A DNA stretch of 63,538 nucleotides, filler included, from Octopus bimaculoides (taxonomy: Eukaryota), in assembly GCF_001194135.2 (NCBI RefSeq). It is 7 parts of 7 records of this genome, joined end to end, with 100 filler letters (N's around TTAATTAATTAA, not from the genome) between each part and the next. Parts side by side here need not be neighbours in the genome. Positions count along the whole stretch, not along the records: positions 12,714 to 24,334 come from NC_068983.1; 6 more parts are not named here. One strand, given 5' to 3'. Of this stretch, positions 3,897 to 63,538 are shown piece after piece. A program made the position numbers and the translations under genes. The stretch's first letter is position 1; every line of letters starts with the position of its first letter. The notes under the pieces were generated by a model. That model was not told where the DNA came from. It was given only the letters and a program-made list of their open reading frames with translations, and ran no database searches.

Positions 3897-6002
3897 TTAA
3901 TTATCAAAATGTTCATGTTGTGTATTTAGAATAAATTACATGTTTCATTCATTTGTTTATTTTTATCTCTTTTCAGCTGATCATTATTAAATTGGACACA
4001 TCTGACTCTACAATACAAATTATTCCATTGTTAAGAACATTTACTACACATTATCCAATTGACTNNNNNNNNNNNNNNNNNNNNNNNNNNNNNNNNNNNN
4101 NNNNNNNNNNNNNNNNNNNNNNNNNNNNNNNNNNNNNNNNNNNNNNNNNNNNNNNNNNNNNNNNNNNNNNNNNNNNNNNNNNNNNNNNNNNNNNNNNNNN
4201 NNNNNNNNNNNNNNNNNNNNNNNNNNNNNNNNNNNNNNNNNNNNNNNNNNNNNNNNNNNNNNNNNNNNNNNNNNNNNNNNNNNNNNNNNNNNNNNNNNNN
4301 NNNNNNNNNNNNNNNNNNNNNNNNNNNNNNNNNNNNNNNNNNNNNNNNNNNNNNNNNNNNNNNNNNNNNNNNNNNNNNNNNNNNNNNNNNNNNNNNNNNN
4401 NNNNNNNNNNNNNNNNNNNNNNNNNNNNNNNNNNNNNNNNNNNNNNNNNNNNNNNNNNNNNNNNNNNNNNNNNNNNNNNNNNNNNNNNNNNNNNNNNNNN
4501 NNNNNNNNNNNNNNNNNNNNNNNNNNNNNNNNNNNNNNNNNNNNNNNNNNNNNNNNNNNNNNNNNNNNNNNNNNNNNNNNNNNNNNNNNNNNNNNNNNNN
4601 NNNNNNNNNNNNNNNNNNNNNNNNNNNNNNNNNNNNNNNNNNNNNNNNNNNNNNNNNNNNNNNNNNNNNNNNNNNNNNNNNNNNNNNNNNNNNNNNNNNN
4701 NNNNNNNNNNNNNNNNNNNNNNNNNNNNNNNNNNNAATACAAATTATTCCATTGTTAAGAACATTTACTACACATTATCCAATTGACTTTGAAAAACCTG
4801 AAAATATATATGTACATTTTTCCATAATACTTTTTCTACAACAGAAATGATCTAATTGACTTTTTGTATGCACCTTCTTAAAAATACTTTTATTTAAACT
4901 ATTATCTTGATTGATGTGGTAAATTAAAATCTATTATATTCTGTGTTTGAATTCTTTCCAAACACAAACCACATGTATAATTGATATATTTTTCTGCTAA
5001 TATGAATAGAAGATATTTTCTGTTGGCATGTAGAAAAAAAGATATGTACAGTCCATTATTCTTACAAACAATCCTTTTAATTTGCTACAATTAAAAAATT
5101 GGTCACTGATTGATTAAACTAACATGCATAGCAATGGTGAAACTTAAATGTAATCTGCATAACACCATTCACTCCACAAGTCACACATTTCAGTAGCTGT
5201 TTGACATCCATGACAAAAGAAATTCTACTGTAGTAAATACTTCAAGAGTGACATCACCTTGTAACTATAACATAAATGGCAGAATTAATCACAAGAGCTG
5301 ATGGCAACTGCACCATCTGTTGCAGAAAAATTATCATGTCAGTCAGTAATCAAAGCACTAACAGTGAGGCCATATTGTATAGACCATATTGTGATAACTG
5401 CAGCATCAGTGATGCAAAAATAGTTACAACTTCCAATATTTACAAAAGTATCACAATGATAATGAAAGCTGTAGCTCTTGTAGTGATACGGCTGGTCTTG
5501 GAACACCTCTACATAATGCCTGTTATAATAAATACTGCAAGAGAGAAAGAGAGCTATAGCCATCACTTGCAAGCAAGTATGACTAGGAAGCTTGTGCCAT
5601 TGTTTCAGCCTGGTGACAGTGAAATATCAAAGATGTGACAACTGGAAGTAAAGAGGACTGCACCAGCACTTCGTTGATACTCATTTCCAGCTGAGTGGAC
5701 CTTAAATTAAGTACCTTGTGGAAGGGCACACCACATCACCCAATCCTGGTATTGAACCCACAACTTGTGAGCCCAACACCTTCACATAATAGTGTACTGA
5801 AGTGAATAAAAGATGAAGGCCTGAAGAAGTGTAGACATGATGACTTTGTATGATGGTATAGCACAACCTTCTGAAAGATGTACAGTGTTTGAGGGAAAAT
5901 TCATTATACTGAAATATATTTTTGTTGATTTAATATTATTTAAAGCCTATCTTTTCAACTAATTTTGAATTTTAGGAACACCTGTTTACCTATCTTTATC
6001 TA

Positions 6003-6219
6003 CGAGGGGGTGCTCAAAAGTTCCTGGCTGTTGGTAAAAGAAAATAGGGGAGGATCAGTTAATTATGATTTTATTCAACATATTCCCCTCTCAGATTCAC
6101 ACACTTATTACAGTGGTCCTTCAGTTTTTCTAAGCCCTGCAAAAGAACTTGGATGGTTGACCCTCCAACCAGGCCTTTCATGATACCCTTAAAACCAGGA
6201 ATTCTTCAGCACCCCCTTG
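6003..6219. mobile_element. mariner-derived MITE
   Basis: TA-flanked TIRs of about 27 bp: CGAGGGGGTGCTCAAAAGTTCCTGG / CCAGGAATTCTTCAGCACCCCCTTG. No ORF. Confidence 0.75.
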
Positions 6220-8559
6220 TACACTTGTAATTACTTTCAGAAAATGTAAATGTGAATTGTAAAATGTAGATGTGAAGCCTACTATACACAGTGATTTGTG
6301 TGTAGTAGAAACAGCTATGAACAATTTTATATTGAAGCACATTGTACCATGACAGAAATAAAAGTAAGAAAAGTCAATTTGAAAAATTTAAGATGTCTGT
6401 TAAAATTTGTTTCCTTATACCTTGTATCTATATCAAATGTAATCCAGTTTTTGCATTTGAATGTTTGTTTGCTTTCATTTATTGATAAAAGTGGAAGAAA
6501 ACAGCATAATTAAAACTGGAAACTGTAATACTGGCCAATGTAAAAATCTTACTTGGCTATCCTGTATTGCCAAAACAAATAAATGCTTCAAAATAGGTAA
6601 ATTATGCAGTTCACTCCACTTATTTATTTATTTTTTTCTAAAATAGTCTTCAGATTTCCAAGTTTTGAATATCAGAAATTCCAATTATAAAAAAGAAGCT
6701 TTTAAAATATTTCATTTCCTCCTTCTCACTGATAACATAATACTTCATCTTGAGAAAATACAAATTCTTAAAATTTATACAATGCTGGGTTTTATAGGAG
6801 ACACTTCTTATCATTTTAGCCTTAACTCCAATCATATATTACATTATGTATGGGGTGTATAGGGCAGCAAGTTAGCAGAGTCATTAGCCCATCAGACAAA
6901 ATGTTTCACAGTATTTTTCCAGCTCTTTATGATTTGAGTTTAAATCCTACCAAGGTCAACTTTGCCTTTCATGGTCAAAAAAGTACCAGTCAAGTACCGG
7001 GATTGATGGTATCTACTAAATCTTCCCCTTGAAACTTACTGATGTTGTGCCATAATTAAAAGGAATTACATATGGGACATATGATTTATCGATTTTGAAG
7101 TATTTATTTTGTTTTGATAATGCAGAAGAGCCAAATTTGTTTTTTTTTTACATTTCCCATTATCACTGGTCTCAATTTTAATTACATGGCTTTTTTCTTT
7201 TACTCATTTATTTATCGTATATACTCAAGTAATAGCTGATCTCATGTAAAAGTCGACCCTAGCAGTTCATGAACAAGAAGACATTTGTGGATCAAGGGAC
7301 CTTATTATCCTTTACGTAGAAATAACACAAAACTGTGTGGCTACCTTACTGTAGCCTGCTCTTTAGGTGGAATGCTCAGTGCTTATAGTAAAACACCATT
7401 TAATAGCGAGCACCACATCTGTTGATGGGTGCTACATCACTATTACTAAAATGTATACACAGGATATGCTGCTAGCCTGCATACATCTTTAAGCACAATA
7501 AACACATGTATCATACACACGTTTACATACTGAAAAACTTGTTTCACAAACAGCACTGTCTGAATTCGTACAAAGGTATGACTTTGGTAAGTCTAAAAAC
7601 ATTAAATTAATTGCTAGATTAGTGGTTCCCATGTGACCTTTATATTTTCCTCATCTCCAAATGCAAGAAACATATGCGTCATACACTCGTCTGTTTACAT
7701 GTTAAGAAACGTGTTTCACAGACAGCACTATTGGCGAACAACAAGAGCTACATGGTTTTGTTTATGGGTTTTGTTATTTACTAGGACGTATATTTTGATG
7801 CATAGAATTGGTAATATTACTGTAATTCATTGTGTTTTTTATTTATATTCACTTAGAGATCAGTTGGGCTTCTGCTTCTGATATGGTACTTTGGATTCTG
7901 GCTTGAATTTCAGCCCCTCACAAGTAGTATCCATGTAATAGTTGACCCCATAAATTTGACCTTAAAAAAAATGATCTAAAAAATTTAACTTTTACATGAG
8001 TAAGTACAGTATTTGTTCTATATGTATAAAATATCTGGAAAATATAAAAAGTCAGTGCTAAAAGAAAACAGGTTTTCTAATAATGATTGATGAATTGTTA
8101 TATAATCTTGTCCCTTTTAAAGAAAAATGTTTTGTTTGCTCAGTATCAATGTCATGCAGCTTTACACTTCTCACAAGACACACAAACACTTCAGGCATGG
8201 TTTGAACAATTGCACTGCAGAAGTTGGAAGATAGTAAGTTAAAGCAAATACAATTGTTTCAAGTAATCTTAACCCTTTGTCTGTTCTGTGTATCACATGG
8301 GATACACAGGACGTATTTTCCAGGCATCCATGCATCATATATGATATACATTCCCAATTTATTTCAATCAGCAGAGCAACTTGGTACTTATGAAAAGAAA
8401 GCTTTATATTACTCAGAACATATGAAACAAGAGCTAACTAAAAGTCTGAAAACAAACATGGGCATTTAGGACAAACTTATAAAAATGCTTTGGACAGACA
8501 GAGGGTGAAAGATATGAAGCAATCTATAAGTAGCACATCTCATCACCATCATCATTGCT

Positions 8560-11134: not shown

Positions 11135-11205
11135 TTGGTTGTCTGAATTGTCTGAGTTGTCTAAATTGTCTGAATTGTCTGAGTTGTCTAAATTGGCTGT
11201 CTGAA
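11135..11205. repeat. 9-bp minisatellite (TTGTCTGAA/GAG/AAA) with 27-bp higher order
   Basis: Direct reading: ttgtctgaa ttgtctgag ttgtctaaa, repeated twice. Confidence 0.85.
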
Positions 11206-11224
11206 GTTTCCCCAAGCTATTCTT

Positions 11225-12010
11225 ATTTTAGCAGCTACGCTCTCAGAGTATCCACCCTCACTACAGACTTGGTCGCCTAATGGAAGCTATCCACTACTTC
11301 TAGTTTTTCCCCTTGGCATGTGCTGGAAGCTGTTCTCTGTACATTTTCAGTGTTTATTGTCCCTATGCATCTGCCACACACAAAACCATCTTCTCAGTTA
11401 ACCTTCCTTTGATATTACTGCACCTCTTATGTGTCCATAGCTTGCACCAGGTACATCTTATGGAATTTCTACCTACATCTTTCCTACAGTTTGAGCAGAG
11501 CCATCTACCTGAAGGGATTTGTGGTTTGTCTGCCTACCTACTTACTAAGCCTTTTGTTTTTGCTAGATTGACTCTATGGCCCTTTGATTCTAAACCTTGC
11601 TTCCACACCTGAAACTTCTCTAGAGCAAGGTCATCTGCATAGAGAAGCTCCCAGGGGCAGTCTGTCTTGAATTCTTCTGTTATTGCCTGGAGGACTATGA
11701 CGAATAAGACAGGGCCGAGGACTGATCCTTGGTGGACCCCTACTCCTACCTGGAATTCTTCGCTATACTCATTGCCGACCCTCACCTTACTGACAGTGTC
11801 CCTGTACATAGCTTGTACAGCCTACACTAACCATTCATCTATTCCTAGTTTCCACATTGACCACCAGATAAGAGATCGGGGGACCCTGTCAAAGGCTTTC
11901 TCCAAGTCAACGAAAGTCAAGTACAGAGGTTTATCTTTGGGTAGGAATTTCTCCTGCAGCTGTCTTACCAGAATATAGCATCAGTGGTGCTTCTCCTTGG
12001 CACAAACCCA
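11225..12010 (-). pseudogene. Decayed RTE-clade reverse transcriptase fragment containing an internal PHD finger
   Basis: Minus-strand translation: QFGFVPRRSTTDA ... FVDLEKAFDRV ... GVHQGSVLGP ... LYADDLAL ... NLAKTK ... CSNCRKDVGRNSIRCTWCKLWTHKRC ... VCGRC ... LEVVDSF. Contains stops and frameshifts. Confidence 0.92.
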
Positions 12011-12713: not shown

Positions 12714-14235
12714 AAAATTGTGTGTAAGAATTAATAGCAGACGTATCCAATGTAAGAAAAGTGATGTATGGAATAAGTAATTGTTATGCGCTTATAGAAA
12801 AACAATTTATATTATAGAAATTGATACATACCTGTTGAAGATTAAAATGTTTTTGACGCGTGTATAATCATAGAGAAAGTGAAAGACATGAAATGTCCGT
12901 TTGTGTGTGTATGTGTGTATATTTTTGGCGGGATTTTTGCCTTTAGCAGGAGTTGGTTTGTTTTATCTGTCGATCAATGGCCGGACAAGTGAAAAGGGAA
13001 GGCAATCTTTTGAAGTCGAATGAAGATGCATGGCGAGTTTTATGACTGAACTTCTTTTGAAGTTGTGGTGAGAGGGAGAATTGATGTGCGTGCGTATGTC
13101 TGTGTGCGTGTGAGTGTGTATGTTTGATGGGGTGTGTATGTTTGATGGGGTGTGCATGGCAGAGAGAGTAATGTTGATGGTGTATGTGTATATGAGAGAG
13201 AGAGGGAGAAAGAAAGAGAGATAAATGAAATTTATCATTCAGTTTATTTATTTATTATGTATACATGTATGAATGACTTCAGTGACGCACACTCACATAC
13301 ACGCACGCACGAAAGTTGTTTTAATCGATTTTCTCTGTAAGTATGGGTCTATGAAAAAAATAGAAAGCGCGTTCCAATATATGCACCCGTCTCCACATGT
13401 GTGCCATTTTTCACGCGAATCCACCCAGCCGTTTGGTCGTGAACCTCAAGACAAGAAAGAATACAACGGTCGGCCAACTTCAATTTATATTATAAACCCG
13501 GTTTCACCCAGCGTTTCTCAACCTGATCATTTCGTGTCCCGTTTCGATTGGAGCCTCAGAAAATGGCTTCAGGAGTTGTGAAGAAAGAACTTGTACGTAA
13601 TCTGTTTGTGAGAGCTATTCTATTGAACGTCTGTCTAATCATTAAAAGATCTATTTAATTATGAACATAGNNNNNNNNNNNNNNNNNNNNNNNNNNNNNN
13701 NNNNNNNNNNNNNNNNNNNNNNNNNNNNNNNNNNNNNNNNNNNNNNNNNNNNNNNNNNNNNNNNNNNNNNNNNNNNNNNNNNNNNNNNNNNNNNNNNNNN
13801 NNNNNNNNNNNNNNNNNNNNNNNNNNNNNNNNNNNNNNNNNNNNNNNNNNNNNNNNNNNNNNNNNNNNNNNNNNNNNNNNNNNNNNNNNGTGTTAATGGC
13901 AGAATAACATTTGAAATGCAAATCGGTGAATGAAAAATAAGTTCAGACCTCTACATGGTAGGTAGACCTGGTAGAAATAGCAGCCAAATCTCCTTCAAAA
14001 CACCCTACTGTATTAATGCGAGAATTCTGCGTATTATGTTAAGAAGTTGATGTTAAGAATTGCTTTTACTGAAAATTAAGCTGTAAGAATGAATGGGAAA
14101 ATCATGTGTAAGAATCCAATTTAAGAAAAGTGAAGTATAGAATAAGTAATTGTTATACGTATCCAATTTAAGAAAAGTGAAGTATAGAATAAGTAATTGT
14201 TATACGCTTATAGAAAAACAATTGTGAGATTAAAA
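12714..14235. repeat. Non-autonomous repeat body pieces (possibly Helitron-like); 14100-14235 repeats 12715-12850 and carries a 47-bp tandem duplication
   Basis: AAGAAAAGTGA-GTAT-GAATAAGTAATTGTTAT-CG occurs at about 12755, 14124 and 14171. The tandem unit starts at 14114 and 14161. A possible minus-strand A|TC 5' end lies at 13649. Confidence 0.45.
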
Positions 14236-14237
14236 TG

Positions 14238-15158
14238 GGCTAATGACTTGTGACTGAGACCTTTGGAAATATGCAGTGCGTGAGAAGACTCAGCAAGCCA
14301 AGCGAGACCATAATCCGAAGCCTCTGCCAGGGGTTTAGCCAGCCCACTTATGTGTACCTTTCCTTCATTGGACACTAAACTCTGCTTGCGAAAACCTGTT
14401 GAGGCAAGTGAAATTGAAATCGAACCAAATTAGACGACTGGCACCCATGCTAACCTCTCCTTCATTGGACACTAAACTCGGCTTGCGAAGACCTGTTTAG
14501 GCAAGTTAAATCGAAATCGTGATGGAACCAAATTCGATGACTGGCACCTGTGCCTGTGGAGCGCTAAGAGCACCTTCCAAGCGTGATCATTGCCAGAGCA
14601 GCTGAGTGGCTTCCGTGCCAGTGGCACGTAAATAGCACCATTTAAGTGTGATCGTACCCAGTGTCGCTTTACTGGCACTTGTGCCAATCTTCCTTCATTG
14701 GACACTAAACTCTGCTTGCGAATACCTGTTGGGGAAAGTGAAATCGAAACTGAACCAAATTTGATGTCTGGCACCCGGCTCCAGTGGAGTGCCAACAACA
14801 CCATCCGACTGGGATCGCTGCCAGAGCAGCATTCAGGCTTCCATGCCAGTGGCATGTGAACAAAACATTCGAGCGAAATTGTTGCCAGTGTCGCTGGACT
14901 GACTCATGTGCAGGTGGCACGTAAAAAGCACCATTTTGAGCGTGGTTATTGCCAGTAGCGCATGACTGGCCATCGTGCCAGTGGCACGTAAAAACACCTA
15001 CTACACTCTCAGAGTGGTTGGCGTTAGGAAGGGCATCCAGCTTTAGAAACTCTGCCAGATCAGATTGGAGCCTGGTGCAGCCATCCGGTTCGCCAGTCCT
15101 CAGTCAAATTCTCTAACCCATGCTAGCATGGAAAGCGGACGTTAAACGATGATGATGA
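14238..15158 (+). mobile_element. 5'-truncated RTE 3' end (ORF C-terminus plus modular 3' UTR, (GAT)n tail); same family as the PHD-bearing RTE
   Basis: AATGACTTGTGAC ... CTTTGGAAATATGC-GTGCGTGAGAAGAC matches the minus strand at about 18215-18272. The block TCCTTCATTGGACACTAAACTC occurs three times (about 14361, 14458, 14692). Confidence 0.85.
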
Positions 15159-16160: not shown

Positions 16161-16955
16161 TATTTATTTATTTATTTATGGGTTTCAGCCAAGTGGCTGT
16201 CGTCATGCTGGAGCACCACCGTGACTTTCCGTCTTTATGCTGTGCTCTCTTCACGTTCCTTGCATGGCTCTTCTCCTCCACCTTATATAGTCCAATCAAA
16301 GAGTTTTGATGGCACATTTGGTGTATAAGAGAATTTGACATCGCTGCCCGAAACTGTGTCTCATTTCGAGCCATTGGTTCGTCTGGTATCGTGGAGAGGA
16401 AAGCATCGAATTTTGTCTTGAAGACCTCGATATCCATGTCTTGCAGGTCTCTCAAATGTTTTGGCAGGGCATTGAAGAACTGAGGTCCTCTGAAACCGAG
16501 GCTCTTGCAGTACCACGTTTTTATGTGAGATGCAGTGGCGACCTGTGCGGGCATTCTTGTAGTACTTGATGCCAAAGTTTGGCACCAGTCCTTCCAGTAT
16601 TTTCCATATGTATATTATTACATATCTCTCCCGCCTGCGTTCCAGGGAGTAGAGACCTAGTGCCTTCAGTCGCTCTCTGTAGTTCATCTGTTGGACTGTG
16701 GCCACCTTTTTTTGTATAGTGACGCTGAATTGCCTCGAGTTCTGCTGTCCGCTTGACACTGCGTGGTGACCACAACTGAGAGCAATAGTCTAGGCGGCTC
16801 AGAACAAATGTCTTCCATAGAGTCAACATGACTTTTTGATCTCTTGTTCGGAATGTCCTCAGTATCCACCCTGCCAGTTGTCTGCATTTTGCTGTCAACT
16901 TGACAATGTGCATGTGAAATGATGCATCACTACACATGTTGATGCCCAGGTCTCT
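16161..16955 (-). pseudogene. CR1/L2-group LINE 3' end (RT C-terminus, 3' UTR, (ATAA)n tail)
   Basis: GWILRTFRTRD ... LSRLDYCSQLWSP ... LEAIQR ... YRERLKALGLYSLERRRER ... FNALPKHLRD ... FKTKFDAFL, with frameshifts. The exact clade is uncertain. Confidence 0.88.
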
Positions 16956-17182
16956 TACTGTCTGTGGTTCTGGGATTGCAATATATATTTATGAATATAT
17001 ATATATGTATATATATGTAATATATGTATATATCTATATATATATATATGTATATATGTATATATATATACATATATATTTATATGCATATGTATATATG
17101 TATATGTATATATAAATATACATATATATATATGTATATATATACATGTATATGTATATATACATGTATATATATATATACA

Positions 17183-17233
<51 letters not shown>

Positions 17234-17901: not shown

Positions 17902-19027
17902 NCAGGAAGGCGACATTGGTAACGATCATGCTGGAGCAGTTTATGTGCCACCGGCACGGAAGCCAGACAGCTGCTCTGGCAACGATCGCGCTCGGACGGT
18001 GCTCTTAGTGCTCCACTGGTACAGTGCCATCATGATTTCGCTTTCGCTTGCCCCAACAGGTTTTCGCAAGCCGAGTTTAGTGTTCCTACAAATTTAGTTC
18101 GATTTCGATTTCACTTGCCTCACCATGTCTTTGCAAGCGGGGTTTAGTGTCCAATAAAGGAATGTTACGCGTAAGTGGGCTGGCTACATCCCTAGCAGAG
18201 GCCTTGGATTTTGGTCTCACTTGGTCTTCTCACGCACAGCATATTTCCAAAGTTCACGGTCACAAGTCATTGCTCCGGTGAGGCCTAATGTTCGGAGGTC
18301 GTGCTTCACCGCCTCATCCCTGGTCTTCTTAGGCTTGCCTCAACCGCTAAGGTGTGGCACTTTTTCATGCAGCTATCCTCATCCATTCTCACCACATGTC
18401 CATAACAGCGCAATTGTCTCTCTTGCACACCACAACTGATGCTTCTTATGTTCAACTTTTCTCTCACGATACTTACACTATGTCGGGTATGCACACTGAC
18501 ATTACTCATCCATCAGAGCATACTGGCTTCATTCCTTGCGAGCTTATGCATGTCCTCAGCAGTCACGGCCCATGTTTCACTGCTATGTAGCATGGCTGTT
18601 AGTGCACATGCATCATACAGTCTGCCTTTTACTCTGAGTGAGAGGCCCTTTGACACCAGCAGAGGTAAGAGCTCTCTGAACTTTGCCCAGGCTATTCTTA
18701 TTCTAGCAGCTATACTTTCAGCGCACCCACCCCCACTACTAAGTTTGGTCACCCAGATAGCGGAAGCTATCAACTACGTCTAGTTTTTCTCTCTGGAATG
18801 AGACAGAAGTTGTTTTCTACATATTTAGAGTGTTTATTGCACCTGAACATCTTCCACATATAAAAACTAACTTCCTAGTTAACCTGCCTTTGATATTGCT
18901 GCACCTCTTATGTGTCCATAGCTTGCACTGGGTACATCTTATAGAGTTTCTACCTACACCTTTTCTACAAATCGAGCAGGGCCATCTACCTGAAGTGGTT
19001 TGTGTTTTGTCTATCTTTCTACTTATT
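17902..19027 (-). pseudogene. RTE-clade LINE 3' portion: PHD finger, RT block 7, C-terminus and 3' UTR
   Basis: CSICRKGVGRNSIRCTQCKLWTHKRCSNIKGRLTRKLVFICGRC, then KLDVVDSFRYLG, SGGGCAESIAARIRIAWAKFRELLPLL, LRCYGHVVRM, and the family 3' UTR. Confidence 0.92.
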
Positions 19028-19466
19028 NNNNNNNNNNNNNNNNNNNNNNNNNNNNNNNNNNNNNNNNNNNNNNNNNNNNNNNNNNNNNNNNNNNNNNNNN
19101 NNNNNNNNNNNNNNNNNNNNNNNNNNNNNNNNNNNNNNNNNNNNNNNNNNNNNNNNNNNNNNNNNNNNNNNNNNNNNNNNNNNNNNNNNNNNNNNNNNNN
19201 NNNNNNNNNNNNNNNNNNNNNNNNNNNNNNNNNNNNNNNNNNNNNNNNNNNNNNNNNNNNNNNNNNNNNNNNNNNNNNNNNNNNNNNNNNNNTGGGTACA
19301 ATACAGGACAAACAAATATACAAAATGCATGAGTTCGATGTTTTTTAAAAATTTACGATTGTCTTTATATATAAGGAATACACATTTTATCAAAATTTAA
19401 AGTTTATATCTTCGTTGACTTTTTTCTTCCCTTTTTTTTCCTTTCTAATACACACACACACACACG

Positions 19467-19500: not shown

Positions 19501-22500
19501 AAATAAAGCAATTGATTCTTCAACCTGACAGCCTATAAGGCCTAGCAGATCGCCTTTTATTTCTCTGATGATTAATTTGGGTTACTCACACCCACCTTTT
19601 TCACCACTTCCTTCCATCTTTGTTCATATACTCTAGCTGACAGGGTCCTCTTTTCCAGCCTTATCTTGCTCTTCAGATGGTATCTGAAGTAAAGCAGCAA
19701 TCCAGGGCCGGATATGTAGGACCCTATCACAAAACCTTCTATTCTTGTCCTCCATATACACTCTTTCAACACTGCTACTGTACAGAAAAAACAAGCCTCA
19801 CCTTCCTTCGAGAGTCCAGTTGGCGGTATCATCTTTATCATAGACCCAGCCGACAGCTGTACTCGTCCCAGATGCGACAACACGTGTTCTACGTAAATCA
19901 TCAAGCTGGAGAGCTGCTGACAATGTACAAAAGCGTGTTGGACAGTTGTCCTGCTCGCATCTTGGACATGTCGGTGGCACTGCTAAACCATGCCTGGATA
20001 ACTTCTCGTGAACAGGTAGGGCATTCCTGTAACACTGCCAAGTCAGAGATTTTTGGAAATTATCCGGCTTGAAGGTTTTCTAAAACAGGTTGGTAAGTTG
20101 GTTCTCGTCGAACCCCAGACCCCGTCCTAGGACGTCNNNNNNNNNNNNNNNNNNNNNNNNNNNNNNNNNNNNNNNNNNNNNNNNNNNNNNNNNNNNNNNN
20201 NNNNNNNNNNNNNNNNNNNNNNNNNNNNNNNNNNNNNNNNNNNNNNNNNNNNNNNNNNNNNNNNNNNNNNNNNNNNNNNNNNNNNNNNNNNNNNNNNNNN
20301 NNNNNNNNNNNNNNNNNNNNNNNNNNNNNNNNNNNNNNNNNNNNNNNNNNNNNNNNNNNNNNNNNNNNNNNNNNNNNNNNNNNNNNNNNNNNNNNNNNNN
20401 NNNNNNNNNNNNNNNNNNNNNNNNNNNNNNNNNNNNNNNNNNNNNNNNNNNNNNNNNNNNNNNNNNNNNNNNNNNNNNNNNNNNNNNNNNNNNNNNNNNN
20501 NNNNNNNNNNNNNNNNNNNNNNNNNNNCTGGCAGCACACGGAGCGCCTCACAAGTAGCTTTCCCCCCCTCCACAAAAAGCGGAAGAGGAGTCGTACCAGC
20601 TTGTTTAGCCAAAAATTGGGGCAAGGCACAACAGACAGGCGGTAGGTGATTACAGATGCTATAAACACCTGCACCACCTCCGCTCTACCCTTCAAGGACA
20701 GAGACCTTCCGGACCACTTCCGTACTGTGGCCTCCACCTTGTTCACCTTGTTCACTACCTCGCTCCAATTCTTCTCTGTCTGGGAGTCTGAACCAAACCA
20801 AACTCCAAGCAACTTAACATGACCATCTGTCCAGTGTCCAACGACACTGGATGATAACGGCTTGTTCCTCCAGGTGCCGAGGCGCAAACCGATGGACTTG
20901 TCCTTGTTAACTTTTGCTCCTGCCACCGCTTCGTATCTTCAGAGAGCATCTTCTACACGAGGTAGTTGTGCTTCTTTAGACACGATGAGAGTGACGTCAT
21001 AAGCAGAAGTGAACTTACCGCATCCGATCTCATTAGGGTTGCCGCCCAACTTCTCCAGCCTCTGCAGCAATGGTTCTAGGGCCAAAACGTACAGGACCGG
21101 AGACAAGGGACACCCTTGACAAACAGACCGCTTGATCGAAAACGGCTCCGTAAGGTAACCATTTATCTGGACGGTGGACCTGATGTCGCTGTACATAGCG
21201 GAGATCCACCCGCGAAAGCCAGGGCCTATCCCAGCTGCTTCGAGGACGGCCTCCAGGTACCGATGGTCTACCCTATCGAATGCTTTACTTTGGTCTAAGT
21301 GGACCAATGCCCCTCCTTTGCCAGCTAATTTCCCAACCCTGTCTAAGCTGTAGCGGAGAAGGTGAAGATTGTCCTGGATCGACCTGCCTGGGATTGCACA
21401 AGTTTGTGCCTTCCTAACAAGCTTCTCCACGACAGCCGTCAACCTTTTAGCTAACACCTTGGCCAAAATCTTTAACTCTACGTTAAGTAGAGTTATGGGC
21501 CTGTAGTTACTAATGCTATCCCCCTTTCTTGGGTCCTTCTTGATCAGCGTCACAACTCCCCGGCTTACAGAACTGGGAATTCTCCCATTCTGCTGCCAGG
21601 ACATCCCCAAACAAGTCCGGCATTAAACGATAAAACTTGTAAGGCAGACTATCCAGTCCCGGAGACTTTTCTCCATCGCACTCAGCCAGCACCCTCTTAC
21701 CTCCATGGGAGTGATCGGGCCTTCACAGCGTTCAGCCTCACGTGCCGAGAGTCGAGGCCCGCCAGCTTGGAAGTCCCTTAAGGGCTCCTCGCGCTCAAGT
21801 GGACCGCTCTCCCCGAACACCCGAGCAAAATACTGGTGGAAAGCTTTTTGCATCTCCTCCTGTCTACAGGTCCTGCGGCCCTGCTCGTCAGTTAAAGACT
21901 TAATACAGGACTTCTTGCCCTTCTGAATCTCCACATGACGTGCCCATCTGGCTACGTTAATACCCTCTTGTTTCCCAGCGTGTAATTTAGCTGTGACTCA
22001 GCACCCTTCATGTTTGGCATTGAGGTGACGGTACAAGACCGTTCTCGCCGCCGTCACTCTGGATGCGGAGCCAGATTCCATTGCCTCATCTAGACTCTTG
22101 ACTAAGTCACCCTCTATTCTAGTCCTATCTAAACTTAGCTGATTGCTAAATCTAATGGACTTAAGACGGATGACTCTCTTGAGGGCGTGTCACCATCTAT
22201 TATTAATGATGGTGCCACATAATGCCCTCTGCACTAACTCCTTAATCTGGGTACGGACAGCTTCACAAGCCAAAATAGACTTGTTCATTTTCCAATACCT
22301 GGGTCCCTGTCTATGATACTTATCTATATGAACCTCACACGTCACAAGTTTGTGATTCATGTAAGGCACAATACAAAAATGTGGACAGCTAAAGCTATGC
22401 TTATCTCTTTCCTTAACAAATATTCTATCTATGTACGATCTGTGTGAGCCGTCGTTATTACTCCACGTCCACTGTGGAACGCTCGGCTCATCCAGTCGGT

Positions 22501-24334
22501 AGCGGTCTACTAGATTAAAGCTCTCTAGTAGACCCTTGACGCGTACATCGAGAATAGTGTTGAAGTCCCCTAGCAAAACTATCGTTTTAGAGATCAATAA
22601 AAAGTACTCCACGTTCCGAAAAAAAACCGACTGCCCCTGTCCATTAGGAGCATAGGCAGCTACCAACCTGAAGGACTGCTTACTTTCATGTGTTACATCT
22701 AGGACGACCAGCCTACCTTCTGGGTCCAGAAAGACAGTACGTATCTGTAAGTCCAAGTTCTTCCTGATAAGGACTGCTACACCTGCACCTCCCCTCCGGC
22801 TCGGAGAAATAAATTTCTCGTAACCATTGAGGAGGGGCGAGAACGCTTCAGGTCCCTTCATCTTGGACTCGGTGATCACAGCCACATCTATTCTATGTGA
22901 AATGAGGTTGTCCAGAAAACAAGCTTGTTTCCNNNNNNNNNNATTTCTCGTAACCATTGAGGAGGGGCGAGAACGCTTCAGGTCCCTTCATCTTGGACTC
23001 GGTGATCACAGCCACATCTATTCTATGTGAAATGAGGTTGTCCAGAAAACAAGCTTGTTTCCATTTCGACCTCATTCCACGCACATTTAAACTACCTAAG
23101 TTAATCATCGAAAAAATAAAAGTAAAAATAAACACTTATGGTTGTGAGAGGGAGCATGGCACTTTTTGTTTGCCATCCTCCCCCACTCCTTCCGCTTCTA
23201 CTGGGCTCTTTCTTGGGGTTGCCACCGGGCTCTGGGTTGGGGTGGCTGCCGGGCTGACTATCAATTTGCCTTCCTTGACGTCGTTGGAGACATCTATTAT
23301 CAATTTATTTATCACATGGTCTTGAAAGAGTCTTTCTTTGTAATCTTCTTCGCCCACCTTCGCGTAGCGGTACTGAGCATCATCCGTGCTGCTCTTGAAG
23401 AATTTTATGCGTGGGTGGGCTTTGGTGTATTTCACAACTTTCTCATATTAATTGCCACTATTCTATCTGTTTTTTTGAAGCCTTTCAATGCAGGGTGAGG
23501 GGGCGTCCTGAAGTTCTGTCCAATGAGAGTTGTACCAGCAGGGTAGGAGTGGGAGGTTTTTTTTCTTCTATCTGTAGGTTTGCTGATGATGATTTTTTGT
23601 TTTGTTTGGGGAGGGGAATCTGGTGTGTGTTGTTTCTTCTTTTTATTTGAGACTGATGTGAATTCCATTTCTGTTGGTTCACTTTCCTTCTCGGGAACTA
23701 TTTTCCCAGTTGTCCTCACATTTTCTTGTTCTTGTTTTTTTCCTTCAGTCTTTTTACCTTCAACTGCCACAGTGACTGTTGTTGCTTTTTTTTTTCCTCG
23801 TCCGCTTTCGAAGGAGGGGCATCACTCGCGTTAGCGGTGTTTTGCTTTTTCATGCAGGTCGAGCGAACGTGACCCTTTTGTCCACACTTAAAACATCTGG
23901 GTCGACGCCCCTCCCACTGACACACAAATGGTATGCCCCTCCGCCACAAACACCCTGTCGGGAAAATTTTCAAACGTATTATTTTCCGCTTGGACTACCA
24001 TTTCAAGCGTCTGCCCTCGCCAATTAGTTGCTTCTTTTCTCCTCATGCTCAGAATGTTGATAGTCTCCTCCACATCGAAAATTATGGCTGCTGCTACCCA
24101 CATCACGTCGTATCCAACTGGAATATCCCCCACTGTCACTCGTGCCATTCTTTTCCCCATGTAAGTGGGCAGCAACATAATTGCTTCATTTTTCAAAGTT
24201 TCTGTTGAAACTTCTTTCGCCACTTCAGCCGAGTTGAAGTGAACTTCAATTGCTGACGTGGTGAATTTTTGGCCAAATTGGTGCCAAACACATCTCTACA
24301 AGTTCGTTACGAACCTCTGCGATTTTTCTCTCCT
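19501..24334 (-). mobile_element. Near full-length decayed Tx1/L1-clade LINE (ORF1 with CCHC knuckle; ORF2 with APE, RT and C-terminal CCHC)
   Basis: ORF1 about 24300-23136 with CFKCGQKGHVRSTC. ORF2 from about 23108: GSLNVRG ... AVITESK ... LLGDFN ... YIDRIFV ... NHKLV (APE); NYRPITLLN ... DQSKAFDRVDH ... QGCPLSP (RT, YADD reduced to AYD); TCPRC ... HAFVHC. AATAAA near 19560. The 5' end is cut by a linker gap. Confidence 0.95.
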
Positions 24335-62584: not shown

Positions 62585-63538
62585 AAATACATAAACTTGG
62601 CTACATCCTCTAGTTTACCGGTTTCTAGTTTAATACGTTTGCTGTTTTCTTCATTAATGCGCATAATTTTTGATTTGTCACGGTTGACTTTCAATCCTCG
62701 TTTGGCAGCTATTGCTTCTAATTTTGACGTTTTATTTTGCATTTGGCTATATGTTTGTGAAAGTAGCGCTATATCATCTGCAAAGTCGAGATCTTCTAGA
62801 GCTTCTGCATCCGTCCATTCAATGCCTGTTTCGCTTTCAATCGTAGTTTCCTTCATAATCCAATCTATAACTAGTAGAAATAAAAAGGGAGAAAGTATAC
62901 AGCCCTGTCGAACTCCGGTTTTTACTTCGAATTTATCCGTAGCTCCGTTTCCATGCATGACTCGGCATGACATTCCTTGGCAAGTTGCTCTTATTATAGA
63001 TATATACTTGTCTGGTATGCCGTTGTGCTGCATAATTCTCCATAAGCCTTCCCTATCTACACTATCGAATGATTTTTCGAAATCAATAAAATTAATATAA
63101 AGCGGTGCATTCCACTCTGTGCTTTGCTCCAAGATGATGCGAAGAGTTGCGATTTGATCTACACATGAACGGTTCTTCCTAAATCCGGCTTGTTCTTTAC
63201 GCAACAATTTGTCGACTGATGTCCTCATCCGCTCCAAAAGTATCCTGTTAAAAACTTTTCTGGAAGTCGATAACATAATCCCTCTATAATTTCTGCAAAC
63301 ACTTAAATCACCTTTTTTTGGCAATTTTACGATGAGTCCCTCTTTCCAATCATTAGGCACATTTTCTTCCTGCCATATCTTAGAAAATAATGGATGAAAC
63401 ATTTCTACCACTATTCCTATAGCTGATTTCATTGCTTCAGCTGGAATATTGTCTACACCTCCCACTTTCCCATTCTTGAAGGATTGTTTAGCCTTTCTTA
63501 TTTCAAACTTGGACGGTGGGTCAAGGCTGATGTTAAGA
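62585..63538 (-). pseudogene. RTE-clade reverse transcriptase from a second lineage without PHD, with a long open frame
   Basis: KLPKKGDL ... NYRGI ... EQAGFRKNRSCVDQI ... FIDFEKSFDSV ... GVRQGCILSP ... LDFADDIALL ... NRDKSK ... LEDVAKFMY. Homology breaks before the expected LG, and the ORF continues past the window end. Confidence 0.93.

Follow-up and report, generated by a model that had tools for sequence, protein, structure and literature searches.

We analysed a window of Octopus bimaculoides DNA (the whole stretch examined, 63,538 nucleotides with its filler letters, from assembly GCF_001194135.2), in which the piece derived from NC_068983.1 carries a decayed copy of a long interspersed nuclear element (LINE) of RTE type. 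The minus strand of this copy encodes a PHD finger. Comparison with intact homologues showed that the finger lies inside the reverse transcriptase (RT) of the element, between RT motifs 6 and 7, and that it belongs to the enzyme as a selected, integral component rather than being a nested element. An earlier note on this DNA had proposed just such an insertion of a PHD finger into the RT core of an RTE-type LINE and had spoken of a successful lineage; the in-frame position, conservation and purifying selection described below bear this out.

The finger core (18978-18847, minus strand) has the ligand spacing C-x2-C-x10-C-x2-C-x4-H-x2-C-x14-C-x2-C, i.e., an exact C4HC3 pattern, together with W-x-H and a phenylalanine two positions ahead of the last Cys pair, all of which the earlier note had read correctly. 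When taken in isolation, the window finger matched the Pfam PHD family PF00628 at 29.6 bits (E=7e-7), above the gathering cut-off of 24 bits, in a profile comparison such as that note had advised; in context it scored 24.4 bits. The fingers of homologous proteins scored 20-28 bits against the same family, some of them under the cut-off. Weaker C1 and RING-like Pfam matches to the window finger were attributed to the Cys/His pattern alone. In an AlphaFold2 (AF2) model of the isolated window finger (mean predicted local distance difference test, pLDDT, 77), the predicted strands at residues 28-30 and 37-39 and helix at residues 40-43 correspond to the PHD fold. Nearly all of the top 50 Foldseek matches to this model were PHD fingers, with probabilities of ~0.6-0.99 and weak E-values of at least 0.035, and these neighbours were of mixed ligand type (ARID5, BPTF, ING4, TAF3, BAZ2B, BHC80 and Pygo2). 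All eight ligands were invariant in an alignment of 121 sequences with the window finger as reference (alignment A2). Because the Pfam score exceeds the cut-off and the ligands are invariant in this alignment, the stretch encodes a real PHD finger and not a chance match.

The window copy itself is a pseudogene fragment with two stops and at least two frameshifts. By tblastn, a 449-residue homologue (P0002) matched positions 19026-18220, spread over three frames, and the minus-strand frame from 19026 translates as ISRKIDKTQTTSGRWPCSICRKGVGRNSIRCTQCKLWTHKRCSNIKGRLTRKLVFICGRCSGAINTLNM*KTTSVSFQREKLDVVDSFRYLGDQT. As the earlier note had stated, the finger is in frame with KLDVVDSFRYLG (RT motif 7), with a single point stop, a TAG, between the two; an octopus homologue (P0035) has Gln where the window copy has this TAG, which fits a single CAG>TAG change. 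The W at position -2 from the first Cys, within the ISRKIDKTQTTSGRWP stretch, occupies a conserved aromatic position. The thumb and C-terminal region contains at least two frameshifts and one further stop, ahead of the stop codon of the open reading frame (ORF) at 18217-18219, and no C-terminal Cys-rich motif was found either in this region or in the consensus of the family alignment (A1). At the DNA level, the copy is 81% identical to positions 6447-7386 of a locus from O. vulgaris (L002). It is the only coding copy of the PHD-LINE family in the piece. Since it is cut off at an assembly gap, beyond which a search with P0002 found no RT similarity, it cannot by itself show that the finger lies inside an RT, and the architecture was taken from homologues.

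Using the read-through translation as query, we retrieved 65 proteins, most of them annotated with both RVT_1 and PHD, among them a match from Hydractinia symbiolongicarpus and octopus entries, from O. bimaculoides and O. vulgaris, with 79-88% identity. With P0002 as query, more than 3100 clusters matched at E <= 1e-20. Most of the top 120 matches carried RVT_1 and PHD annotation, and the named carriers among the matches were Hydractinia, Mercenaria mercenaria, Branchiostoma belcheri and B. floridae. Unbroken ORFs with the same order of motifs were present in octopus, Hydractinia, Mercenaria, Branchiostoma and many metagenome-assembly contigs. The RT-embedded PHD architecture is widespread in marine animals of several phyla. 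In the homologues, the order is …YADDL…GLRVN.(K/S)KTKVM.S, ~12 aa, the finger with the consensus (Y/F/W)PCxVC..GVG.NSI.C..C..WVHKKCSGI.G.L…(F/Y).C..C, a further ~12-25 aa, and L.VV..F.YLGD…. The position downstream of YADD and the KTK block that the earlier note had assigned to the finger, hidden by the N gap in the window copy, is thus confirmed by its relatives. A full C4HC3 finger was found between YADD and YLG in 129 of the 135 fetched proteins having both motifs; among the remaining six, five kept this spacing but had a finger that was damaged or variant, and the distant PHD-less protein P0065 alone was short-spaced.

The distance between YADD and YLG was bimodal among the 150 best cluster representatives of an exhaustive HMMER search, at ~60 aa in proteins without the finger (n=73) and ~120-127 aa in those with it (n=28), and one more PHD-bearing protein fell between 100 and 119 aa. 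Identity to the closest PHD-less relatives is only ~35-40%, and their motif 6-7 interval has ~20 residues. A short interval of ~17-20 aa is thus confirmed for relatives without the finger, the earlier note having counted ~17 aa in the RTE at 62585-63538. When PHD-less proteins were aligned to a PHD-bearing query, the alignment broke exactly ahead of the finger, and local alignment revealed a clean insertion of ~66 residues, made up of the C4HC3 finger with short linkers either side, at the turn between the KTK strand of motif 6 (GLRVN..KTKVM) and the strand leading into motif 7. The placement between palm and thumb in the earlier note agrees with the sequence order, and is to be refined as to the exact site, which is the tip of the beta-hairpin after the KTK strand. 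Full-length carriers, i.e., P0183 (1031 aa), P0186 (1004 aa) and P0182 (1042 aa), have an Exo_endo_phos domain at residues ~10-240 and RVT_1 at ~530-770, followed by the PHD. Because these proteins reside on contigs of only 3.2-4.5 kb, each represents a single-ORF element. They came from the representative search only, as the four genomic or metagenomic loci (L001-L004) were all 5'-truncated ahead of the apurinic/apyrimidinic endonuclease (APE).

Conservation was assessed in 119 sequences from octopus, clam, hydroid and amphioxus that are ~50% identical to one another. The ligands C442, C445, C456, C459, H464 and C467 were invariant, and C482 and C485 were kept in 99% of sequences, as was W462. 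The position two residues ahead of the first Cys was aromatic in 96% (Y42/F27/W19/H8 %), P441 was present in 100% and an aromatic at position 480 in 98%, while V444, K465 and K/R466 were near-invariant. The beta-1 strand GVGxNSI (G448-V449-G450, N452-S453-I454) was conserved in at least 94%. The residue ahead of the conserved W was H, L or K and not acidic, and D477 was kept in 61% only. The mean frequency of the majority residue was 0.68 in the finger core, compared with 0.78 in RT motifs 1-6 and 0.64 in motif 7 plus thumb; the insert linkers were looser (0.47-0.48). For the one pair of sequences at usable divergence (P0002 vs P0001, with coding DNA from L005 and L006), the ratio of nonsynonymous to synonymous substitution rates (dN/dS, Nei-Gojobori) was 0.11 for the finger, measured over 44 codons only, and 0.16 for the rest of the protein. 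Deeper pairs were saturated at synonymous sites, with the dN of the finger still below dN elsewhere. Given the near-invariant ligands and the dN/dS of 0.11 vs 0.16, these comparisons indicate that purifying selection constrains the finger no less strongly than the enzyme around it, a result that bears on the dN/dS check called for at the outset.

Several features fit the RTE superfamily. The APE domain of P0186 shares 38-44% identity with 'craniofacial development protein 2-like' proteins of plants, which we take to be RTE/BovB-derived endonucleases. Neither RNase H nor a C-terminal CCHC/Cys-rich motif was found in the family consensus or in Pfam scans. The 3' untranslated region (UTR) is ~120 bp long and closes in (GAAATC)n. 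The tail motif CACTAAACYCNGCTTGCRAARAC occurs in five copies in the piece, where none is expected by chance and where the earlier note had counted at least five family tails; two of these copies are tail-only units. Such units stand in tandem with one another or directly after the LINE's own tail and have GAAATC-type repeat ends, which suggests that they are elements resembling short interspersed nuclear elements (SINEs), or tail-derived elements, mobilised by the PHD-LINE family. Tail-sharing between LINEs and SINEs is typical of stringent LINEs such as RTE. The combination of a single ORF, an RTE-like APE, the lack of RNase H and a Cys motif, and a short, tail-sharing 3' UTR fits the RTE superfamily; the assignment is made at the level of the superfamily, above its division into RTE, RTEX and other subclades. 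Members of the RTE clade (RTE-1, BovB, Rex3; RTE/RTEX superfamily) likewise have a single ORF of ~1000-1040 aa with an N-terminal APE followed by the RT, lack RNase H and a C-terminal Cys-rich domain, and have a short 3' UTR with a short tandem repeat end and tail-sharing SINE-like units. Unlike them, the PHD lineage has the ~66 extra residues between RT motifs 6 and 7.

A neighbour-joining tree was built from 85 RTs with the insert removed (200 bootstraps), with a sampling biased toward relatives of the query. The 20 PHD-bearing RTs formed one bipartition in 131 of the 200 bootstraps (66%), i.e., with moderate support, so that mapping the insert on an RT tree did bring its carriers together. 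The mean distance among PHD-bearing RTs was 0.81, compared with 0.59 in the sampled PHD-less set. The grouping is consistent with one old acquisition of the PHD.

Further observations were made on members of this family. The O. vulgaris locus L002 (OX597814.1) contains a longer copy at 4982-7386, running from the post-APE linker to the tail, in which the PHD is damaged (CGRSG for CGRCSG), as well as a second, inverted copy at 11183-11897, 4 kb from the first; from these copies, the family is abundant and clustered in octopus genomes. An ARPIDGRP extension directly after the last Cys pair (residues 487-496 of the homologue P0082) is present in ~55% of sequences, and the octopus subfamily is without it. 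One RT-PHD protein (P0025) was deposited as 'MAG: hypothetical protein [Herbaspirillum sp.]', and almost certainly stems from animal DNA that was sorted into a bacterial metagenome-assembled genome (MAG).

An AF2 model of P0082 (711 aa, built with alignment A1) had a mean pLDDT of 90.4 and a predicted template modelling score (pTM) of 0.87. The finger and both linkers reached a pLDDT of ~95-97, and these values suggest that the finger is held at a fixed position on the RT rather than on a floppy tether. With the whole model as query, the best Foldseek matches were human L1 ORF2p and R2 structures (E ~1e-24 to 1e-20). In the structure of R2Bm during target-primed reverse transcription (TPRT), the upstream portion of the target DNA follows the RT, linker and thumb, and a loop termed RT6a (residues 672-677, DGHRKK) lies between motifs 6 and 7 (PMC10499050). 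This loop helps to recognise an upstream DNA motif and contacts, or wedges into, the upstream target DNA in TPRT (PMC10499050; PMC12180492). When aligned to the family profile, R2Bm matches as far as residue 669, just ahead of the finger; with RT6a at 672-677, the aligned sequences show the PHD to occupy the same loop as RT6a of R2. The R2 insertion is also basic. It differs from the PHD finger in comprising a few residues, in having no zinc ligands and in belonging to a site-specific element with a restriction-like endonuclease, whereas the PHD lineage has a whole zinc-finger domain in an APE-type element. The two inserts are not homologous and are positional analogues only.

With regard to its chemistry, the finger is very basic, as had been noted earlier for the window copy: the net charge averages +5.9 (range +1 to +10) and is +12 in the window copy. 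Among PDB entries, the finger matched best by sequence to the PHD fingers of Pygopus (Pygo1/2, E=3e-5 to 3e-6), followed by PHF23, ALFIN-like 3, PHF13, PHF2, KDM5B and TAF3, all of them readers of histone H3 di- or trimethylated at lysine 4 (H3K4me2/3). The motif (Y/F/W)PCG(V/I)C…W.H..C.G is common to the finger and Pygopus, and both aromatic positions of the finger align with the Pygopus Y and W, two positions that reportedly form the methyl-lysine pocket in structural work on Pygo-BCL9. Thus, of the features expected of an H3K4me2/3 reader, the finger has the cage aromatics, in the form of the -2 aromatic and the W two residues ahead of the His. It does not have the acidic contacts or the acidic-to-neutral surface, in view of its mean charge and of D477 being kept in 61%, and GVGxN stands in place of the acidic Pygopus loop EVNDDQD. 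The likeness to Pygopus, an H3K4me2/3 reader of the Wnt pathway, extends over YPCGxC…(I/L)xC…C..W.H..C.G, and the proteins are otherwise unrelated.

As to function, we tentatively favour, with somewhat less than even confidence, the view that the finger is a target-site engagement module in TPRT, mainly contacting DNA, possibly nucleosomal, next to the nick. A clamp or wedge on target DNA would be expected from the RT6a position, the conserved basic charge and the lack of a C-terminal zinc knuckle. During TPRT, the finger would engage the target site from the RT6a-equivalent loop, and this basic module would clamp or wedge the target DNA, possibly nucleosomal, beside the nick and so stabilise priming. 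In this role it may act as a functional substitute for the C-terminal zinc knuckle used by L1 and R2, whose C-terminal zinc fingers unzip target DNA (PMC7617806). The conserved peptide groove, formed by the -2 aromatic, the GVGxNSI strand and the W, may also allow a secondary contact with a histone tail. For this mechanism we infer the orientation of the finger on the RT, its ligand and any effect on targeting, starting from the architecture, conservation, selection, fold and RT6a-equivalent position documented above. The nucleic-acid clamp that the earlier note had offered as its second choice thereby fares at least as well as the chromatin-reading role that it had put first, on the strength of the basic charge and the loop position. 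Several points weigh against a DNA-contacting finger. The R2 analogy is one of loop position alone, and the authors of the R2 structure term 6a 'R2-specific'. By sequence, the closest solved relatives of the finger are H3K4me2/3 readers, and its most conserved non-ligand residues (the -2 aromatic, GVGxNSI and the W) line the canonical histone-peptide groove. Moreover, peptides are the typical ligands of PHD fingers, and a PHD that binds DNA would be unusual.

An alternative would be a histone-mark reader, in which an H3 tail, probably methylated at K4, is bound by a Pygopus-like two-aromatic half-cage, and the endonuclease (EN) and RT are tethered or licensed at nucleosomes of a given chromatin state, leading to an insertion bias. 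Transposon precedents exist in the PHD of CR1 ORF1 and the chromodomains of chromoviruses (cited in PMC6673714), and the canonical PHD fold, the H3K4me2/3 readers among the best PDB matches, the motif common with Pygopus and the high conservation of the -2 aromatic (96%), the W (99%) and GVGxNSI (at least 94%) all agree with such a role. We nevertheless regard it as unlikely, and place it second, given a net charge that averages ~+6 and reaches +12 in the window copy. Acidic contacts are what reader PHDs usually offer to the H3 tail, a basic peptide, whereas here the acidic Pygopus loop has become GVGxN and the residue ahead of the W is H, L or K. In addition, the conserved W is a structural core residue in many non-reader PHDs, and the structural neighbours of the finger also include readers of unmethylated H3K4 (H3K4me0), such as BHC80 and BAZ2A/B, and so point to no single type of ligand. 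The chromatin-reading role put forward in the earlier note is therefore upheld as far as the cage aromatics and the Pygopus-type matches go, has against it the strongly basic charge and the missing acidic loop, and stands as a candidate role. We hold the wider proposal in equally low regard, namely an ancient pan-marine-metazoan RTE-type lineage with a chromatin reader in its RT core, in the loop turned toward the upstream target duplex. Such a reader would respond to a feature of the nucleosome, possibly the H3 tail, perhaps in its K4 methylation state, together with nucleosomal DNA, and would thereby control nicking or priming. A finger that serves as a template-RNA or structural module, binding the element's own 3' tail RNA, recruiting a host protein or bracing the palm-thumb junction, seems to us rather improbable and comes third. 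The 3' tail, which is conserved and looks structured, serves tail-only and SINE-like units as well, and this does imply specific recognition of the tail by the protein; the basic charge would suit RNA binding, and the high model confidence for the finger and both linkers suggests rigid packing on the RT. Against this, PHD-less RTE relatives also use stringent tails, and a purely structural role leaves near-invariant surface residues (GVGxNSI and the KK after the His) unexplained. R2 and L1, for their part, hold the 3' end of the template by an N-terminal extension (NTE-1/NTE0) and not by the motif 6-7 loop (PMC10499050; PMC7617806). Finally, the window finger abuts an assembly gap in a copy broken by stops and frameshifts, as would be the case if an RT fragment had merely been joined, through nesting of an unrelated element, an exon of a host gene, an assembly error or coincidence, to a Cys/His pattern. 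The probability of such an artefact is negligible in view of the intact ORFs of the same order in octopus, Hydractinia, Mercenaria, Branchiostoma and metagenome contigs, the invariant ligands, the dN/dS of 0.11 and the Pfam E-value of 7e-7. The intact in-frame homologues rule out a nested element, which the earlier note had named as a possible refutation, along with a host exon and a chance pattern.

PHD fingers have been described before in retrotransposons. CR1/L2-type LINEs carry them in ORF1, some Crack/CR1 elements have them at the ORF2 N-terminus, and they are also present in some long terminal repeat (LTR) elements (PMC3708506; PMC6673714). As in the family described here, the PHDs of those LINEs are encoded by non-LTR retrotransposons and their function is putative; they differ in belonging to the Jockey/CR1 superfamily and in being located in a separate ORF1 or upstream of the APE, rather than inside the catalytic RT of an RTE-type element. 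Kapitonov and Jurka in 2003 and Metcalfe and Casane in 2014 reportedly found PHD fingers in ORF1 or at the ORF2 N-terminus of CR1/L2/Crack-type LINEs. Like the earlier note, which knew of none, we found no published description of an RTE-type LINE with a PHD inside its RT in the searchable literature; Repbase reports lay outside this search, so that an earlier mention there is possible. Automatic database annotation already labels such proteins 'Zinc finger PHD-type domain-containing protein', so that the pairing of the two domains can be seen there. The paper on the octopus element RTE-2_OV lists EN, RT and a 'C2H2 zinc finger' in 1109 aa and mentions no PHD, this comparison being by description only; according to a later paper, the sequences had not been reported.

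Other zinc modules and chromatin readers of mobile elements resemble the finger in part. The C-terminal domain (CTD) of L1 ORF2p and the zinc knuckle (ZnK) of R2 are likewise zinc modules on a LINE RT next to the thumb, where they handle target DNA; they have, however, a C2HC/CCHC fold, lie after the thumb rather than ahead of motif 7 and are not homologous to PHD. The integrase chromodomain of chromoviruses joins mobile-element machinery to a chromatin-reader domain (cited in PMC6673714). Readers of this type are terminal domains or separate subunits of DDE-type enzymes with demonstrated histone binding, as is that of RAG2, in contrast to a domain internal to an RT. The PHD of RAG2 likewise joins a chromatin reader to transposase-type machinery, and domains of this kind direct or license DNA cleavage or integration.

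LINE RTs are usually viewed as an unchanging core, and the choice of target is ascribed to the endonuclease or to DNA-binding domains at the termini, whereas here an internal zinc-finger domain is found in several phyla. If the finger contacts DNA or nucleosomes, it would represent a new means by which target sites are chosen or stabilised in APE-type LINEs, and a natural case of the motif 6-7 loop tolerating a folded domain, which would be useful for retargetable RT and TPRT gene-insertion tools. It would also allow a link of LINE integration to chromatin to be tested in octopus and similar cases, neuronal RTE activity having been proposed for octopus. Should the finger be a chromatin reader, this would be the first LINE with integration directed by chromatin state through the RT itself. 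Even if it were a structural brace only, the finger would still be a useful marker for a large, as yet unnamed RTE subclade.

Table. Coordinates of the PHD-bearing LINE copy, of the tails of its family and of the second LINE (positions along the window).
Feature	Position	Strand	Basis or remark
Decayed 5'-cut RTE-type LINE copy	18098..19027	-	RT from end of motif 6 to 3' tail
End of motif-6 strand and N-terminal insert linker, ISRKIDKTQTTSGRWP	18979..19026	-	Homologue alignment (...KTKVLISRK...SGRWPC)
PHD finger core, C4HC3 (C17 C20 C31 C34 H39 C42 C57 C60 of translated stretch)	18847..18978	-	PF00628
In-frame TAG in linker between PHD and motif 7	18817..18819	-	Inactivating point mutation of window copy
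RT motif 7, KLDVVDSFRYLG, primer-grip strand	18751..18786	-	In frame of PHD; matches LxVVxxFxYLGD of all homologues
Thumb and ORF C-terminal region (…AWAKFRELLPLL… RLRCYGHVVRM … ELWKYAVREKTK*)	18217..18750	-	Translation, tblastn, A1 consensus
3' UTR and tail, ending GAAATCGAAATCGAA	18098..18216	-	~120 bp; tail motif at 18127-18149
Assembly gap (N)	19028..19292	.	Hides or replaces upstream RT of window copy
Tail motifs of PHD-LINE family	14373-14395, 14470-14492, 14703-14725	+	
Tail motifs of PHD-LINE family	18060-18082, 18127-18149	-	
Second tail motif, just downstream of element's end	18060..18082	-	Tail-only or SINE-like unit
Tail fragments of PHD-LINE family	14242..14725	+	77% match to L002 tail
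Second LINE, APE ORF	22190-22957	-	Exo_endo_phos, E=6e-14
Second LINE, linker ORF	21623-21934	-	
Second LINE, RT	20939-21610, continuing 20060-20926	-	RVT_1, E=7e-25

The window also contains elements outside the PHD-LINE family. A second, unrelated and nearly full-length LINE occupies 20060-22957 (minus strand), possibly extending to 24223; it is broken by N gaps at 20137-20527 and 22933-22942, and its RT is ~30% identical to that of the PHD family. Two ORFs just upstream of it (23432-23770 and 23888-24223, minus strand), both without a Pfam match, could be its ORF1. At 16168-16937 (minus strand), three ORFs of 135, 132 and 138 aa, shifted in frame relative to one another, with the motifs …YCSQLWSP… and …ERLKALGLYSLERRRERY… and without a Pfam match, look like a frameshifted 3' fragment of a third LINE, corresponding by sequence to the C-terminal region of a CR1/L2-type ORF2. 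A long (TA)n array at 16981-17233 adjoins this LINE-like fragment. Lastly, a perfect 47-bp tandem duplication (2.0 copies, 100% match) is located at 14114-14206, just upstream of the tail fragments of the PHD-LINE family.

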